From positions 140,903-204,902 of the forward strand of contig NW_005434566.1 in NCBI RefSeq assembly GCF_000315625.1: DNA of 64,000 nucleotides, read 5' to 3'. This DNA comes from Guillardia theta CCMP2712 (taxonomy: Eukaryota > Protista > Cryptophyta). Below, one piece after another: positions 4,560 to 47,232 of this stretch (positions are counted from its first letter, which is position 1; each line of letters opens with the position of its first letter). The translations under genes were made by a program, and so were the position numbers. Below the pieces are notes generated by a model. It did not search any database, was not told the DNA's origin, and saw only the letters and a list, made by a program, of their open reading frames with translations.

Positions 4560-5880
4560 ATCACCAGCGGCCGGAACCGGCGGGCCAGTAGTAATAAACT
4601 TTGAGTAAAGAAAACTCCGGTTTGCCTTTCTTTTTCCGTTGAACGGAGAGTCCGTCCGATCCGAGTCACCGTCATTTAACTTAACTTTGAGTAAAGGCAC
4701 CGTCACGGTCGGGCCCCGCCGCCCCGGCGGCGTTCGGGCGGCGCGGCCCGGCGGCCCGACCCGGCCCGGCCCACCGGGCCGGGGCCAGGGCAATCCGATC
4801 CGTGCCCCGGCCAGCGGGCAACCCGGGGCCAGGCCCGGCGCGGGGCGCTCAGGCTCTCGGACGGGGCCGCCTTCGGCGGCGGCCAAGTTAGCATCGACGC
4901 CCTACTAGCGGCCGCCGCTAGCATCCGGAGTCCGGGGCCGGCCAGCCTCTGGCCGCATCAGAAAGCCCGGCCCGGCCTCCGGCATTCAATGATTCCGAGC
5001 GACGGTTCAACCGGGTCAGTGAACGGTTCTGCAGTGCGCCGGCCCGGGCGGGCACCAGAATTGCGGGGCTACGTCACTGATGCTCGGAAGAATCCTGACT
5101 GAGGCATTGTGACCGTAGTACTGTGAAAAAATGTCACGTTCAAGAGACTTGAGTCGGAGTCGGAGGCTGCCAGTGAGAGCCTCGGAGGCAGGGGGGGGGT
5201 GACGCCGGGTTCTCAGAGTCTAGAACGGCGGGAAACTTGGCCATGACCGGCGAGGCTCCGAGCGGGCAGGCGGGAGTCGCGCGGCCCGACGGTGGCATCA
5301 CTGAGTCACCCGCCGCGCGGCCCCGGGCGCCGCGCCGGCCGGGCGGCGGCGCCGCTCGGCCCGCCGCCGGGAAGCGGCTACTCACCGTCCGATCACTGTG
5401 TGAGTCGGTCACTGTCACTGATTGGAATACGCCATGACAGTGACCCGGCGTGCTACGGTGACTCGTCGCGGAGTCGGCGAGGGCCGAGCCGGGTCACCGT
5501 CTCGGACCGTACTCCCCGAGCCGGGCCCCGGCGGCCGCCGCCGAGGCCGCGGCCGCGTGGATACCCGGTTATCAGTATGATAGGCGCGGCCGGGCCTTTC
5601 CTGGCAATCGGGCAAGACGGTTCAAAGTTACCGTCGGTAGTACGTGACTCAAAGTTTAGATTTCTCGGCGGTGGCCGTACGAAGCCAACGGTCTCCGACG
5701 CTCCCGTACCGTAGTACCGTACGGCGGCACTCATCCGTGACTGCCGGGCACTCCGTGACTAGTGCCACTTAACGTACTGGCAGCTTAACTTTGAGTAAAG
5801 ACGGCAGCCTGAGTGATAAGCCGGGCGGCCGGGCCGGCCGCTAGGGCGGCCGGGCCCGGACAGCGGGCTGGGGAGAATGT
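4560..5880. repeat. GC-rich palindromic 'vocabulary' tract with three AACTTTGAGTAAAG motifs
   Basis: Built of GGCCGGG/CCCGGCC, GTCACGG, CCGTAC, GACTCGGAGTC and CAGTGAC words. The 14-mer occurs at 4597-4610, 4683-4696 and 5787-5800. An abrupt AT-rich boundary follows at ~5880-5990. Confidence 0.75.
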
Positions 5881-40400: not shown

Positions 40401-41616
40401 TGCCGTGACCGCTCTCAATATCTGTTATTGTGTTTAATACATTTTATAAGTCATAAACTTGGAGTTTTTTTTTTCGGCTGTTCCTCAATCTTTTTTTTAT
40501 TTTTTTTTGGATCGTCATTGTTTCAGTTTCACCCACTCGCATTCACTTCCCGCAGACTCTGTGCAGGGGCGGACGAGGGGAGACGGGATGCCCTCCTGGG
40601 GGATGAGACACGAGAAGAGATAAGAGGCATGTAAGATGGGTTGGAAGGAGAGGAGGGACCAGCAGAGTGGACCAGGTGGCAAGAGCCTTGTGGAACCATT
40701 GCGAGTGTCGTTGGAGCAAGCACCCTTGGTCTCAGTAAGTTCATGTACAAGGCAGAAGATACGATCAGCGTGAGTCTAGTGTGTTTGCTTCTGGCTCATG
40801 GTCGGTAGAAGCGTTTGATTTGCTAGTCTACAAGAATCAAGAGAGAAATCATCTTCCATCTTGGTTTCTAGATGATCCTTGTACCCATACTTTTACAACA
40901 ACAGTCTCCTGGAAGCGAGAAAACAAATAATCCAAAGGAGAGGATAATCTGAGGGTTTGCTGCATGTTTTTCTGAGAAAACTGTGATGAGGAGCTGTGAA
41001 TACTGGTTTCGTGACGAGAAGGAGGATGTCATAGTTGGGTTGGTAGGATGGCGCCATTCTCTTGGGGTTCTTGGTCCTGTTTTGTACGTTTGTGATGACA
41101 AGAACCGTTACAGAATCTATTTCCCTCTTGTTTCTGTCTGTACGATAACAGCTTGATTGTTATCGGATGTGTCTGCTTCAAAATGACTAAAGAAAACTGA
41201 CGATCAGGTGACATCTGAGGACTCGTAGGGTTGTATAAGACTAATACATATGAGTATGAGATGATCACCATTTCAGCTCATCATGAACATAATGATGCGC
41301 TTTGCGCTCCTTTTTACATTGTGCGGGTCTCCTGGTATGAACTTATATTCAATATCATTGCTATTTTGGCTTGTGTACCTGCTGCATCCGATTGGCTTGT
41401 GTACCTGCTGCATCACCCCGGATCAGATCTGAAGTGATGCCAATACAACAAGATACCTCACTTGTTTCGCATGTGATATGGTGTTTGAACCACAAACGCA
41501 ACTGTAGATTAGAATAGTTGTGAAGGAGATGCTGATATACATATGTGTATGTATGTATGTTTGTATGCTGATATGCGAAAACTTCATTCGTATCATGAAC
41601 GACAGGGGACAGTAAA

Positions 41617-41810
41617 TGTTGTATACACAACCTTGCGTAAGACCTTGAGCTCAGATGATCTTAGGATCACTGTTCATAAGTTACACACACTCATCAGATC
41701 AGCAGCATCACTGCAGCTATCTGGCATCGTCGTTCTGTTTCACAACACTACGCCCAAGGGGCGTCCGGTACGAGTCCAGAATACAACTTCGCAGAGCCGT
41801 AATGGCATTT
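41617..41810 (-). repeat. 3' LTR (5'-truncated)
   Basis: Aligns to 43586-43850 and ends in CA on the element strand. Confidence 0.85.
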
Positions 41811-43528
41811 GCGATGGCGGCTTGACTCGCTGGAGGTTGGGAGGTCTGTGTCACTGAGGAAGAAGCATTTCGATGAGCTTGCTTTTCCTTGCGGCAGTAC
41901 TTCAACGTGCGTCCAGAACGTTTGCAGTACGTGCAGAAGTAATTCGGGGAAGAACCGGAGGACTGCGCGGGAGCGCGGGAGGGCTGAGCTCCTGGCGTCG
42001 ACGGAGAGGGTTGAAGGGCACAAAGAGGCTGCGGAGCCGGAACGAAAGAAGACGGTTTGACGAAGGTGAAAGCTTTCTGTGCTAAAAGCGACATCGTGGC
42101 AGCGGTAGCAGGATGCATGTGCGCAATGGGGACCATCACAAGTCGGAGATCAGGGTCACGAAAACCATTGGCGAATTGTTGAAGAAGATTGTGCTCTTGA
42201 AAGACGACAGCCTCACATTTGTAGAGTAAAAGCTCGTCAACATAGCGTTGCGTCCGAAGAGTATAATCAGTAATCGATTCGTTCACGCCTTGACAAAGAT
42301 TGGTTACTTGTTGCTGGAGCTTGGCGATGTGAGCCGCGGGAGGAAATTGCTGCGTGATGAAAAGGCAGAATTCCGGCCAGGGAAGAAGGGACAATTCGTC
42401 AAGAGGACGATCGTGAGACATGCGTCGAAGAACAGCGTCGTCAAGAAAGGTCGTCGTGTAGTGAACCCAGAGGTTGCCGGGGATTCGATGGACAGACAGA
42501 GCACGTCCCATCTGAGAGAGCCAGCTGTGAATGCTTCGAGAATCAGCCTGACCAAGAAAGGGGGTGATGGAGGTTCTGGGCTGAAACTTCGGGAGTTTGT
42601 CACCATTGAAAGGCTGGGAGGGACTGACGGGCGTGGGCTGAGGAATCCGCGACATGCACGCGTCACGAGAGGGGTTCTGCTGCGTGTAAGAAGCACGAAT
42701 ACCTGGCAACGGAGTCATCAGTTTCTCTGGTAAGAGAGAAGTCGGAGGCGGAGCTTTGGGAATCGACGAAGGGTCTGACTCAACCGGGAGGGCAAGCATC
42801 TGCAACAGCCGAGGGCTGGGAGGGGAAGGAGAACTCGTCAAGCGCAGAGACGGTTGCGCGCTGGACGGGGCAGGGAGGGGCTTCAAGCGCTGGATTGCTG
42901 AAACTGAGGTAGAAAGGGCGGAAACCAGGCGTTCTTGAAGTTCATATGATTGAGCAAGTAGACGATAATTGAATTCCTGAGATTGCTCAAATTGACGATC
43001 CAGCTTGCGTTCAAGTTCTTCCTGACGCTTCTGGGCATCCTTGCGGGCATCTGCATTCTGTTGCAGGAGTAAAGCAAAAAGTTGACTAAGAGATGGTTCT
43101 TTGTCGCTGGCGGCAGGAGAGTTCCGACCCGAAGACATCGCAGAGATGGGCTCAGCCCATCCGAACACCCCTGCGGCAGGGGTGTTCGGAGAACATGCTC
43201 CAGAGGCTGACGTGAAGTTGCGGAAAGAATGCGGAGCTGGAGACTCCCTGGCTAAGACAGACGGTGCTGGTACAGGCGTAACAAAGAATGGGCGAGCACC
43301 AGAAGCTGGATGGGAATCCTCCTGTGGTCGATCTTGCATAATAGAATCATCATCTCTCGTTACGGAAAAGAGACGGGGAAATTGAAATTGTTCAGCTCCA
43401 ACATTTGGGTGGATTGTGGTTGGATCAGCAACTTGTTCCGTAGATCTCTGAATCCTTCGTTCACTGGTCTGAGCCTTACGCGATCTTTTCACTTTCAACA
43501 GTTTGCTTGCTTTCTTTGCTGAAATCAT
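41717..43528 (-). CDS. gag: Retrotransposon Gag (capsid + degenerate zinc knuckle)
   Basis: Intronless 603-aa ORF: coiled coil, Pro/Ser linker, capsid-like PFLG...SWLSQM...WPEF...QQF, major-homology-like LCQGVNESITDY, and CTYCKRSGRTLKYC (CCHC with His->Arg). Confidence 0.88.
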   Translation of the reverse strand: MISAKKASKLLKVKRSRKAQTSERRIQRSTEQVADPTTIHPNVGAEQFQFPRLFSVTRDDDSIMQDRPQEDSHPASGARPFFVTPVPAPSVLARESPAPHSFRNFTSASGACSPNTPAAGVFGWAEPISAMSSGRNSPAASDKEPSLSQLFALLLQQNADARKDAQKRQEELERKLDRQFEQSQEFNYRLLAQSYELQERLVSALSTSVSAIQRLKPLPAPSSAQPSLRLTSSPSPPSPRLLQMLALPVESDPSSIPKAPPPTSLLPEKLMTPLPGIRASYTQQNPSRDACMSRIPQPTPVSPSQPFNGDKLPKFQPRTSITPFLGQADSRSIHSWLSQMGRALSVHRIPGNLWVHYTTTFLDDAVLRRMSHDRPLDELSLLPWPEFCLFITQQFPPAAHIAKLQQQVTNLCQGVNESITDYTLRTQRYVDELLLYKCEAVVFQEHNLLQQFANGFRDPDLRLVMVPIAHMHPATAATMSLLAQKAFTFVKPSSFVPAPQPLCALQPSPSTPGAQPSRAPAQSSGSSPNYFCTYCKRSGRTLKYCRKEKQAHRNASSSVTQTSQPPASQAAIANAITALRSCILDSYRTPLGRSVVKQNDDAR

Positions 43529-43576
43529 TCTTGGAATCGTTTGAGATTCTGAATCAAAGCTCGAATGTGAACCAAT

Positions 43577-43585
43577 TCGCTACCA
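43577..43585 (-). promoter_or_regulatory. Primer-binding site TGGTAGCGA, complementary to a tRNA 3' end (probably initiator Met)
   Basis: TGG directly abuts the LTR-terminal CA at 43586. Confidence 0.75.
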
Positions 43586-44019
43586 TGTGATGTATACACA
43601 ACCTTGCGTAAGACCTTGAGCTCAGATGATCTTAGGATCACTGTTGATTAAGCACACACACTCATCAGATCAGCAGCATCACTACTGCTGCTGGCTGGCA
43701 TCGTCATTCTGTTTCCCTACGCCACCTCTACGTTACTAAGTTACCAGGTACGTTACACCCAAGGGGCGTCCCGGCGGTAACTTCGGCGGCGGCCGGGCCC
43801 GGAATCATAATGAGAGTCCAGAATCTTGAATCTTGAATACCGTAGTGGCAGCCGTGGCCGGGACCCCGGATCGGACCCGCCGCCACTGGCACCGTCCGTC
43901 GGATCACCTCGTGGCACCGGGCCGAGTGACGCCGCCGGAGCACAAGTTTGTGACCTGAGACTTGTACTATGCCGCTCCACGCAGATATCACCGTCATCGA
44001 CCTTAGTCACGTTGTAACA
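43586..44019 (-). repeat. 5' LTR, progressively disrupted by insertions toward its outer end
   Basis: Near-identical to the 3' LTR for ~125 bp, then only islands (CCCAAGGGGCGTCC, GAGTCCAGAAT, CCGTA(A/G)TGGCA) separated by extra sequence. Confidence 0.75.
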
Positions 44020-44660
44020 AGACAGTTTTGAAAGTTTTGCTCACACGCCGCGTCGTCCGACGGCAATTGACTCAGTCGGCGGGCCTCACGGCGCCGGTCA
44101 CGTGACGGTGACGTGCCAGGCTAGTCAGTACGGTCACCGCCCGATCACCGTGACGCCGGACAGAGTCTAGCCTACCGTACTCCCGAGTAGTCCGATCGGA
44201 TGGCCCGCCATCCTCGCCGGCGGGGCGGTTTCACTTTACTCAAAGTTAAGTGAAAAATCAGTTTAGTTCAGTTCACGGTTCCGAGCTTTGCCGCTAGCCT
44301 GGCAGATGTGACCGTACGGGCCGGCGGTGGCACGTGACGGACCGTAAGTTCAGCTCAGCGGCCGCCGGCAAACCCAGTGGGCCAAGCCCGGCCGCCCGGC
44401 CGCCAGTGACCGTACTAGGCTACCCGCCGGGCCCGGGTGCGCCGGGCCCATCATAGTCGTACCGGTACCGTGCCGCAAATCAGTGAACCGTCCGGACAGC
44501 CTGGCAGTGACCGCCCGGCCACTAACCGTCCGGTGTGGCACCCGATGACTGAGTCGGACCGGCGGAAGTTGAGGCGGCACGGTCTTGCTATCATGCCAGT
44601 CGCCGGGTCACGGCTGTCCCTCGCGACTGAGTCAGTACGGTATCCGATGATCGCTGATAT
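43770..44660. repeat. GC-rich palindromic vocabulary tract with AACTTTGAGTAAAG motif on the minus strand
   Basis: Same words as 4560-5880. CTTTACTCAAAGTT at 44234-44247. AT-rich boundary at ~44655-44680. Confidence 0.75.
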
Positions 44661-44819
44661 CATAATTATATTTTATTGAGGCGGACTTGGGTAAGTTGAT
44701 CCGACATTGCCGCAATGAGGCTCGGAACGAGCAGCGGAGGAGGGGGGACGTGAGATAGGACGAGAGAAGGGAAGGGAGGAGTACGAGATGAGTAGGGGAG
44801 GAGAGGAGGTGAGAAGGAG

Positions 44820-45060
44820 GTGAGGAGTTGCGAAGGAGGTGAGGGGAGGAGGACGAGGAGAGGAGAGGAGTTGCGAAGGAGAGGAGGGGAGGAGGAGGAG
44901 GAGAGGAGAGGAGTTGCGAAGGAGAGGAGGGGAGGAGGAGGAGGAGAGGAGAGGAGTTGCGAAGGAGAGGAGGGAAGGAGGAGGGGCAGAGGAGAGGAGT
45001 TGCGAAGGAGAGGAGGAGGAGGAGAGGGGGGAAGGAGAGGAGGAGGAGGGGAGGAGAGGA
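44820..45060 (+). repeat. Polypurine minisatellite, ~43-bp period with core GAGTTGCGAAGGAG x5
   Basis: Core at ~44825, 44869, 44911, 44954 and 44997, separated by GGA/GAG runs. Confidence 0.85.
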
Positions 45061-45459
45061 GGAAGATGGGATGGAGACGGGAGGAAGACAGGAGTGAAAT
45101 GTATTGGAAACGAGGACATGGCGGAGTAATGACTCAGTGATTGGGTCTAGAAGGAGAGATGTGATGCAGACTGGGATTGTTTTAACTGGGAGGTGCATTC
45201 AGGGAAGGAGAATTGAAGGAGTACAAGATGCATGTCAAGACCTGTTAGCGATAGAGTGGCGAGCATACGGACTGGGCAGGAATCCTGATTGTCGTCACCC
45301 CGTCGCTATCTTGCAACCATTCTTCGGCTCCGCAACCTCCGCTTCGCTCCGAGAGGTCGAGGACTTCATAGGATCGAAGGTCAAGGCTGCACGGTGAGGG
45401 ATTGGCGTGGAGGAGAAGGACGGCCTGACTTGCTCTGGAAGCGATGGGGTGCCTGTAGC

Positions 45460-47232
45460 ATGCAGAAACAAGTTGCCGTCTTCTTGTTGTGCATCTTCAC
45501 TCTCTTCTTCATCTTCGTCTGGCACTCGTGGCTAAGAAACAGCTTCCAACCGTAGCCTCACTCTCCCCTCCAGCACCGCGTCCTCCCTCTCCCCGTTCTT
45601 GCAATCTCGCTGCCTCCCGTGCTGCCCTCCACTGTTGTGAAAATTCTCACTGCTGAGATTCTTTGACCCCCGATCTCCATCACTCTTCTCCTTCTCTCTT
45701 CTCCTTTTCTACCTTCCTGTCCCTCCCTTCCTCTCTCTCTCCCTGCTCCCTTGCCCCCTCTCTCGCTCGTCCTGATCCTGTGCTGGCTATCCTGCAGGTC
45801 TATCAAGGTGAGGAGTCAGCGGATCAGTTCAACCCATTGCAGGCATTGGAAGCCCAAGAGGGTGGCAGGAAAAGTTTGTTCCCTGCCCCTGGCTGTGCTG
45901 GAGGTGAGAACGAGAGGACAAGGATACTGAGATCAGAATCTGTGGAGACGACGATGGAGATGTTGAGAGCAGTTTGCACACAAAGAGACATGTGGTGGAT
46001 GTGTTGATGGAAGTGGTACGCGATAGTAGATGATGATTGGGTTGATGATGTTTACTATGACGGTTCCTTGTCTGTTCATGCGTCTAATCTAGTCTGGAAC
46101 AGAAGAGACCAACCACTTGCCCCACAAGGTACTTGACGTATGTTGACTGGAATGGAGCACAAACAAACAACCAGGAAACTCAATGAAACATGGTTGTGTT
46201 TCAGATTCTGACATGTTGAAGGCAGATTATTGCCTTGATGAATGCTCTGCAAGTCTCGCGATCAAACAATCTCACGCTCATCCTCTCTCCCGGTGTGCTA
46301 TCAGTTCAGATCGATGATAGTGATCATAATGATGGAGATTATGAAGACGATAAAACTGATGATGATGATGGAAATGATGGAGATGTCGTCCAACGACGAC
46401 GACAATAATGATCACCACAATGTAGAAGCATCAGCTGCTGCCGCTCGTGATGGAGATGATGATGATGGCATTGGAGACGAATGATGGTGGAGAAAATTTG
46501 ACATTGATTTGCTCCCACCAGCTGCGTCGGCTTTGGTTGAAGATGTTTTCCGCATTCAAGAGCTTCAGAAGTTCTTCTGTGTCATGTACGATATCGGCAT
46601 GTCGCTCAACAACGTTTCTGCATTCATCTCAACACAAAGAGGAACAAGGGCTGTCGTTCCTAACGGAGCTGAGGGCAAAGTTGTTGTCAGCACAGGTGAA
46701 AGTCTGTGTTTGATATCTTCATGTGTCTTGCACACTCAGTTGAGCTCGGTTCTCAATCTTTAAGATCTGCCAGAACTCTTGTTGTTTGTTGTCGACACTT
46801 GTTGTTTGTTGTCGACACTGCCTTCTCCTCGCTTGCCTGTTCCCCGCTAGCCATAGCTGAGGACCACTCCTGCTCTCTCGCTCGCTCTTCTCTCTCTGAC
46901 GGACCTCTCCTCGTCCCGAGCAGGACTGCATGCTGGGCAGGACATGTTCCGACTTGTTGGACCACCAGGTTTCTCTCCAAAGATGATACAACACCTCCTT
47001 CTCAGGTCCAACAAACAGATCTGCGAGGTATCTCGATTGTGCTGGAGGTGTTGTTGGCTGATGCCGCTGTTGCAGAAAGTTGACTTGATCCTTAACAACA
47101 TCTACAAGCGAGGGAACGGATACGTGGCCGTACATCTGTATGATTATATCAATCAGACTTGACGACGATGATGACTATGGAAACGTTGTTTTTGTTGTTG
47201 TTGATGATGATATCTAAGATGTTTATGTGTAT

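Follow-up and report, generated by a model that had tools for sequence, protein, structure and literature searches.

We analysed a stretch of 64,000 nucleotides (nt) from the cryptophyte Guillardia theta CCMP2712 (hereafter the window; C108:140903-204902 in a genome assembly of 87 Mb and 669 contigs), which has a GC content of 52.3% and an observed/expected CpG ratio of 0.67. Our subject is the segment at positions 43586-44660 (all positions are those of the window), in which one of the two long terminal repeats (LTRs) of a retrotransposon is broken up by short insertions and gives way to a GC-rich tract. A sequence-only reading of this segment had proposed that ordinary DNA is rewritten here by a localised process that inserts short, partly templated palindromic words, and had likened this process to repeat-induced point mutation (RIP) in fungi. 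Literature searches for the insertion phenomenon did not find a description of it.

The retrotransposon is marked by direct repeats at 41617-41788 and from 43588, and it reads along the minus strand rather than the plus strand, so that the right repeat is its 5′ LTR and the left repeat its 3′ LTR. A 2-nt spacer lies between the LTR end and the primer-binding site (TGGTAGCGAATTGG, 43572-43585, minus strand); the site is conserved in every 5′ LTR context. A gag-like open reading frame of 603 aa (41717-43528, minus strand), which reads through into the 3′ LTR, is 84-91% identical to the gag regions of other copies and weakly matches the Pfam family Retrotrans_gag (PF03732; E 2e-4, below the cut-off). 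By alignment with the 3′ LTR contexts of other copies, TCGC at 41789-41792 (minus strand) is a polypurine-tract remnant, the last 4 nt of that region, beyond which the sequence jumps into gag. No pol is present, and because the LTRs are ~6 kb apart in other genomic copies and 1.97 kb apart here, the element is a pol-deleted derivative. The family has >40 genomic copies with an LTR of about 171 nt (TGTTGTAT...ATACAACA), TG...CA ends and short terminal inverted repeats, and one full element (L016/L003) has a 5-bp target duplication, GCTTG. Here the left flank is GTAAA (41612-41616), and its right-hand partner could not be located because the outer part of the right LTR is overwritten. In a young subfamily (loci L003-L027, for example L016:1503-1673) LTRs from many loci are identical or differ by 1-2 nt, suggesting that it was recently active; RNA sequencing (RNA-seq) reads matching the family LTR carry variants of other copies. 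Two copies of a perfect 23-nt direct repeat (TTGGCTTGTGTACCTGCTGCATC), 26 nt apart, lie shortly beyond the 3′ LTR (41366-41414).

The two LTRs have fared very differently. The 3′ LTR (41617-41788, minus strand, 172 nt, TGTTGTAT...ATACAAC[T]) is free of insertions and has the form seen in other family copies, whereas the 5′ LTR (43588-43839, minus strand) is 252 nt long instead of about 171; collinearity with other copies is nearly complete over the inner 130 nt, the outer part consists of islands and insertions, and the outer end is eroded. The earlier description of the pair as nearly identical over the first ~125 bp was right in seeing close direct repeats, but too generous as to identity, given that 126 of 133 positions agree over the inner ~135 aligned nt, plus small indels, and the element is therefore old. 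Further out, the collinear islands noted before are real: TACGT (43749-43753), CCAAGGGGCGTC (43759-43770), CGGT (43775-43778), GAGTCCAGAAT (43814-43824) and AATA (43836-43839), between insertions of 26, 5, 4, 31, 2 and 10 nt. One more proposed island, CCGTA.TGGCA, is probably a chance match, its counterpart in the left copy lying past the LTR end in internal sequence. In total, ~85 extra nt lie in the outermost 110 nt of the right LTR, against 0 in the left LTR at a distance of 2 kb. All of the ~30 other genomic copies compared have the short form, so the right LTR gained sequence and the left lost none. This disposes of deletions in the left copy, one of the refuting outcomes listed in the sequence-only reading, and the left copy can be used as the ancestral form, as the sequence-only reading had done.

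The well-preserved insertions follow one rule. We here use the term scar for an insertion of the form X-C-X′-G-X, in which X is 2-3 nt of the target, present in duplicate, and X′ is the reverse complement of X, placed between the two copies. The 26-nt insertion (43723-43748) holds a perfect scar, TTA-C-TAA-G-TTA (43733-43743), and the 31-nt insertion (AACTTCGGCGGCGGCCGGGCCCGGAATCATA, 43779-43809) opens with AACTTCGG, which is the core of a recurrent scar, GAA-C-TTC-G-GAA. The 4-nt insertion CCGG obeys the rule with a single-base X. The duplication AATCTTG-AATCTTG pointed out before corresponds to [AAT]CTTG[AAT]CTTG[AAT] at 43822-43838, which represents two successive scars at one site; each consists of a 3-nt target duplication, a C, an incomplete inverted copy (TT) and a G. 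Scars of the same kind, [CAA]CTTG[CAA] and [GCAA]CTTG[GCAA], occur among the insertions in a dispersed repeat, TE-X, described below.

An assembly artefact, raised in the sequence-only reading as a refuting outcome, does not account for these insertions. Contigs from two independent runs (2021 and 2011, the assembly itself possibly deriving from the latter) match 43654-44261 and 44233-44840 without a single difference or gap, and 38-nt Illumina reads from a chromatin immunoprecipitation (ChIP) run span the entire stretch with no indel calls, so that three read sets agree on the sequence. The depth of the ChIP run over the GC-rich tract, ~4-7 per strand, resembles that of the unique flanks, which by itself says nothing about chromatin.

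The GC-rich tract (43840-44660, 0.8 kb) has 63.6% GC and an observed/expected CpG ratio of 1.17. Its 31-mer depth is that of single-copy DNA, with the exception of the 29-nt terminus of a second dispersed repeat, TE-Y, for which the depth is about 300 times that of the flanks, and its only relatives in a BLAST search of the genome match positions 204-301 of the 937-nt query, a TE-X fragment of ~100 nt. Because of this single-copy depth and the limited matches, and with end-to-end copies absent from the genome, the tract is not a conventional transposable element (TE) family, which bears out what had been supposed from the sequence alone.

The TE-X fragment (43925-44043, plus strand) corresponds to the first ~96 nt of a ~331-nt repeat starting with TGACGGAGCACAAGTTTG and is interrupted by 5-6 micro-insertions, among them CGCCGC, TGACC, CCGT, GTCAC and TTTGAAAG (TTT-G-AAA-G-TTT); [GT]CAC[GT] fits the rule, and the fragment differs from other copies mainly by short insertions. 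TE-Y is represented by its first 29 nt (CTTTACTCAAAGTTAAGT..., 44234-44262, plus strand), after which similarity is lost, and the first 18 nt of this terminus have 841 exact copies in the genome. Two perfect scars were located by the 11-mer search described below, CAG-C-CTG-G-CAG at 44497-44507 and ATC-C-GAT-G-ATC at 44642-44652, the latter at the right edge of the tract. The tract beyond 44043 was considered as an overwritten remainder of TE-X and this was rejected, the collinear alignment score (17.75) being below that of shuffles (25.8 +/- 4.9); an apparent extension of TE-X past 44043 in an alignment with cheaper gaps was judged untrustworthy and was not used. An RNA gene for the conserved ~95-nt core was also rejected, as this core is a repeat terminus and neither Rfam nor tRNA scans gave a match in 43000-45500 or in the window.

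Elsewhere in the genome, TE-X has 156 exact matches to an internal 17-mer, with the terminus TGACGGAGCACAAGTTTG (loci L032-L050 and L063-L122); it sometimes occurs as two inverted units and often lies within a composite unit of ~1.2 kb that holds two copies. The TE-Y terminus, CTTTACTCAAAGTTAAGT(T)AAAAATCAGTACGAGGACAATCAGG..., is likewise dispersed, often inside GC islands, and the sequences behind it are often diverse (L051-L062). A purine-rich minisatellite (GGAGGAGAGGAGTTGCGAAGGAGAGGAGG..., units of ~43 nt) adjoins the tract on the right at 44750-45085, where reads and contigs are sparse. A second GC-rich tract of the window, at 4560-5870 (67% GC, observed/expected CpG 1.14), shares vocabulary with the tract at 43840-44660 and contains six perfect 11-mer triplet scars, eight 8-mer scars and three TE-Y termini.

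The many copies of TE-X give a view of the small-indel spectrum outside the window. A natural copy (L040:1254-1584, minus strand) served as the reference, with no consensus built, 86 distinct copies were aligned to it, and indels were counted if flanked by well-aligned blocks and present in <30% of copies. Unique insertions outnumber deletions by 132 to 24 (binomial p = 3e-19), as expected from the insertion-dominated process proposed earlier, and for indels of 2-9 nt the counts are 98 and 4. This is the opposite of the deletion bias that eukaryotes usually show. Insertion lengths peak at 4-5 nt and at 8 nt, and the inserted bases have 62% GC, compared with 46.5% in TE-X itself. The load per copy ranges from 0 to 15 or more and is uncorrelated with the mismatch fraction (rho -0.06), and insertion density climbs with flanking GC (Spearman rho 0.37, p = 4e-4).

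Neutral decay with nested conventional elements, a reading in which the insertions are no more than random indels and the tract has collected the remains of old elements, is very improbable given this spectrum. The tract does hold fragments of two other repeats, and the LTRs, differing at 7 of 133 positions plus indels, do belong to an old element. However, an insertion:deletion ratio of 5.5:1 overall and 24:1 for 2-9 nt contradicts it, the equally old left LTR has no insertions, and decay would not yield the fixed-spacer grammar, which exceeds shuffles 10- to 24-fold.

This grammar was recovered from the TE-X insertions as well. Of these insertions, 26 carry a duplication of at least 3 nt of flank, where 5.1 +/- 2.1 would be expected, and the duplicated length peaks sharply at exactly 3; the general form X-a-X′-b-X fits 22 of the 84 insertions of at least 4 nt, compared with 2.4 +/- 1.4 in shuffles (maximum 9 in 500). 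The spacers are strongly constrained, a being C in 12 of 16 cases and b being G in 16 of 18. Examples with a triplet are [GAA]CTTCG[GAA], [TTC]CGAAG[TTC], [GGA]CTCCG[GGA], [GTT]CAACG[GTT] and [GAG]CCTCG[GAG], and shorter versions include [AC]GTG[AC] and [CA]TGG[CA]. Palindromy that abuts the flank directly, as in P nucleotides, is not enriched in the TE-X insertions, so the single-base spacer is essential to the pattern. In a 16-nt insertion at TE-X position 53 in L110, ATCGAC-TTTGAGTAAA-ATCGAC, a 6-nt duplication encloses the final 10 nt of the TE-Y terminus, so that the insertion resembles a remnant of a TE-Y insertion.

The same data bear on two further sources of short palindromic insertions, Polymerase-theta-type end joining or replication slippage that copies nearby sequence, and small mobile units of GC-rich palindromic DNA. 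The inverted triplet is indeed templated by the adjacent target, as local copying would have it, and the words do recur on both strands, as mobile units would. Beyond the 3-nt target, however, no template was found within 60 nt above chance for insertions of at least 4 nt (3 direct and 1 inverted, compared with 3.3 and 2.2 expected), and tandem duplications are rare (1 of 84 such insertions). Nor is a fixed mobile unit involved, since different target triplets receive different inserted words, and we regard this group of explanations as quite improbable.

Searching for the complete 11-mer with a triplet, X3-C-X3′-G-X3, extends the pattern beyond identified repeats. The window has 14 such 11-mers, compared with 1.4 +/- 1.2 expected, mostly inside GC tracts, and a 241-kb sample that is enriched for repeat loci has 112, compared with 4.75 +/- 2.3 expected. 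In this sample none of the other 15 spacer pairs comes close to C/G (the next, GG, has 32), and with only unique contexts counted, C/G stands at 128 and every other pair at 40 or fewer. The version with exchanged spacers, X-G-X′-C-X, is the third or fourth commonest class. The triplet is the characteristic length of X, longer versions being found 7 times (d=4) and 0 times (d=5). Scar density in the 241-kb sample is 1.28 per kb at a GC fraction of at least 0.6 and 0.29 per kb elsewhere, a 4.4-fold difference.

Within the tracts, half-scars of the form X3-[C/G]-X3′ are abundant, with 57 at 43840-44660 (10.8 +/- 3.8 expected) and 85 at 4560-5870 (20.6 +/- 5.1 expected), and they cover 36-37% of each tract, compared with 8-10% in shuffles (36% and 8% at 43840-44660). 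Odd palindromes centred on A/T show no excess in the 4560-5870 tract (9, compared with 9.7 expected) and are modestly raised in the 43840-44660 tract (14, compared with 7.2 +/- 2.5); even palindromes have a clear excess in neither tract, and control regions show no palindrome excess. The vocabulary of recurrent words that had drawn attention to these tracts is statistically real, with 18 shared 10-mers within the 43840-44660 tract (1.9 in composition-matched shuffles) and 40 shared with the 4560-5870 tract (5.3 in shuffles), and it is largely the product of this one insertion grammar. Common words such as TCACTGAGTCA, GAGCCTCGGAG, CACCGTGGCAC, GACCGTCGGAC, GAACTTCGGAA and CAGCCTGGCAG are themselves scars. 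We infer that the tracts are built mainly from scars, a view that relies on decayed and nested events in addition to the perfect ones.

Hence, the central proposal of the sequence-only reading, that ordinary DNA has been locally rewritten by short, partly templated palindromic insertions, with an effect at the edge, is borne out, and the insertion-free left LTR 2 kb away shows how local this is. The additional idea of a dedicated mutator or silencing process, which would act like RIP but by micro-insertion and would recognise and overwrite repeats or foreign DNA, is not supported, and we consider it improbable. It would fit the insertion bias, the locality, the gradient at the edge of the LTR, the involvement of three different repeat families and the lack of RNA reads on the GC tract in ~6% of one RNA-seq run. 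However, most copies of the same families are untouched: many TE-X copies and young LTR copies have 0-2 insertions, and the left LTR and all young LTR copies were spared. The insertion load is unrelated to substitution age, a directional base-substitution signature is absent, and scars also occur in GC islands that are not repeats. In addition, the insertions carry 3-nt target-site duplications typical of staggered-break repair, which argues for break repair, for example in the form of transposon excision footprints, instead of dedicated editing.

We therefore interpret the insertions, with moderate confidence, as scars of breaks with a 3-nt stagger that were repaired through hairpin ends, the simplest source of which would be the excision of a cut-and-paste transposon. 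The outer ~110 nt of the 5′ LTR and the adjoining tract would then be a local hot zone in which scars and repeat fragments have piled up. In outline, a break with a 3-nt stagger would put X on both ends, and each end would close as a hairpin, or fold back on itself, with one additional C left unpaired at the tip. Opening of the hairpins at least 3 nt off-centre would leave the 3′ tails C-X′ on the top strand and C-X on the bottom strand, and these two tails could pair via the X/X′ triplet and be ligated to L-X-C-X′-G-X-R. The net gain would be 2|X|+2 nt, or 8 nt for a triplet, and partial resection would produce a 4-5-nt class; both predicted sizes match the observed length peaks. The rule is strand-symmetric, which is the outcome expected from two identical end-processing events. 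Hairpin formation on the flanks, opening by host nucleases and non-homologous end joining with footprints are known for hAT elements, Transib, RAG1 and a Mutator-like element (MULE; PMC5499845).

The putative transposon would make 3-bp target-site duplications, have 5′-C...G-3′ ends and leave hairpins on the flanks by hAT/Transib/RAG-like chemistry. The constant C and G would most simply be the terminal bases of the excised element, with the first nick placed one base inside it. Repeated visits to one place would add C, G and inverted triplets each time, which would raise GC and CpG and generate a vocabulary on both strands, and the scar zone would creep into neighbouring DNA, here the LTR.

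Several observations weigh against excision as the source, or against scars as the main material of the tracts. A plain hairpin that keeps one transposon base pair predicts X-C-G-X′, not X-C-X′-G-X, and the scheme has to assume that the first nick is offset, so that one C stays unpaired at the hairpin tip; Hermes has a comparable one-base offset, in the opposite direction. Perfect scars, peeled off iteratively, make up 5-7% of the tracts (5% at 43840-44660), compared with 0.3-0.8% in shuffles, and most of 44044-44233 and 44263-44660 could not be traced to any origin. The window is the only unbiased sample. A scan of a small sample (~305 kb) for any element combining exact 11-nt terminal inverted repeats, C...G ends and a 3-nt duplication came up empty, and among the 86 TE-X copies no filled site was seen, none of the three large insertions in them fitting. 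Neither of the two dispersed repeats is a suitable agent. TE-Y has C...G ends and 841 termini, but its two complete copies of ~194 nt with inverted termini have no obvious target duplication, and for TE-X the single complete copy that was examined (L049) shows a duplication of 5 bp, CTGAG. Genome searches with the Pfam CACTA (PF02992) and hAT (PF05699) families gave no match, and were uninformative because the controls were silent too. The PIF/Harbinger transposase domain DDE_Tnp_4 has 16 genome matches, several of them in long open frames (for example C133:39210-39716), but the usual 5′-G...C-3′ ends and TWA targets of these elements do not fit the scars. The X-G-X′-C-X class of scars might be a PIF/Harbinger footprint.

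Given that no fitting element was found, that the CACTA and hAT searches were uninformative and that PIF/Harbinger ends are unsuitable, a nuclease under host control has to be weighed as well. Such a domesticated or endogenous hairpin-forming enzyme would make 3-nt-staggered cuts in intergenic islands and at their edges, with error-prone hairpin repair and no excision, so that the islands would be its product or even its target. It would fit the grammar statistics as well as excision does, it would be in keeping with the lack of a candidate transposon in ~305 kb, the 86 TE-X copies and TE-Y, and it would agree with the 4.4 times higher scar density in GC-rich islands. We nevertheless hold it to be rather unlikely, because nothing points to activity of an enzyme of this kind at the locus, the simplest origin of the constant C/G spacers is from the ends of an excised element, and scars also occur outside the islands (at 0.29 per kb) and scattered within repeat copies. 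A fuller version, in which a nuclease retained by the host, such as a domesticated transposase, recurrently cuts intergenic islands and thereby builds and renews GC- and CpG-rich palindromic islands by templated insertion that spreads into neighbours such as the LTR, appears unlikely to us. The islands are rich in TGACTCA-, CACGTG- and TGACG-like words.

Whatever the source of the breaks, the single form X-C-X′-G-X accounts for both the vocabulary of the GC islands and the insertion-dominated small-indel spectrum of TE-X. Read as products of hairpin repair, the scars would be a fossil record of staggered, hairpin-ended breaks that can be read from sequence, and they predict a 3-nt stagger and C/G end bases for the responsible agent. 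If the islands are largely built from scars, CpG- and palindrome-rich DNA on a kb scale can arise de novo from repair, which would bear on the origin of promoter-like islands, of hairpin-prone DNA and of heterogeneity in base composition. The LTR pair and the repeat families serve as internal ancestral controls, which makes the process datable and mappable.

The nearest known counterparts are the excision footprints made through flank hairpins by hAT elements (Ac/Ds, Tam3 and Hermes), by Transib and by a MULE, together with the P nucleotides of V(D)J recombination, in which hairpin ends are opened off-centre by host nucleases (PMC5499845); for the scars, hairpins are what the proposed scheme would require. 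In both cases the target duplication stays in the joint, to which short inverted copies of the flank are added. However, the duplicated unit is 3 nt here, compared with 8 for hAT, 5 for Transib and 9 for the MULE, and the inverted copy sits between a constant C and a constant G, with the inverted triplet serving to join the two ends. The scars also build up to islands on a kb scale and dominate the small-indel spectrum of the repeats of this genome. As to the type of element, CACTA/En-Spm (CMC) transposons make 3-bp (2-4 bp) target-site duplications with no strict target and end in 5′-CACTA...TAGTG-3′. They would thus supply the 3-bp duplication as well as the first base C and last base G that the spacers require, although PF02992 went undetected with a silent control, no such element is present in ~305 kb and the chemistry by which CACTA elements excise is not established.

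RIP shares with the process described here the progressive degradation of repeated DNA and a local shift in base composition. Fungal RIP, however, introduces C-to-T transitions into all duplicated copies during the sexual cycle, whereas here insertions with target duplications affect some copies only and reach islands that are not repeats. Polymerase-theta end joining likewise produces short, partly templated insertions at junctions joined via microhomology, but for the insertions here no template past the adjacent triplet was found within 60 nt above chance, and the spacers and the 3-nt duplication are fixed. Finally, the GC clusters of yeast mitochondria and the palindromic repeats in some organelle genomes of algae are short GC-rich palindromes that have spread through more AT-rich DNA. 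These palindromes move as units of fixed sequence, whereas in this nuclear genome the target triplet dictates what is inserted.

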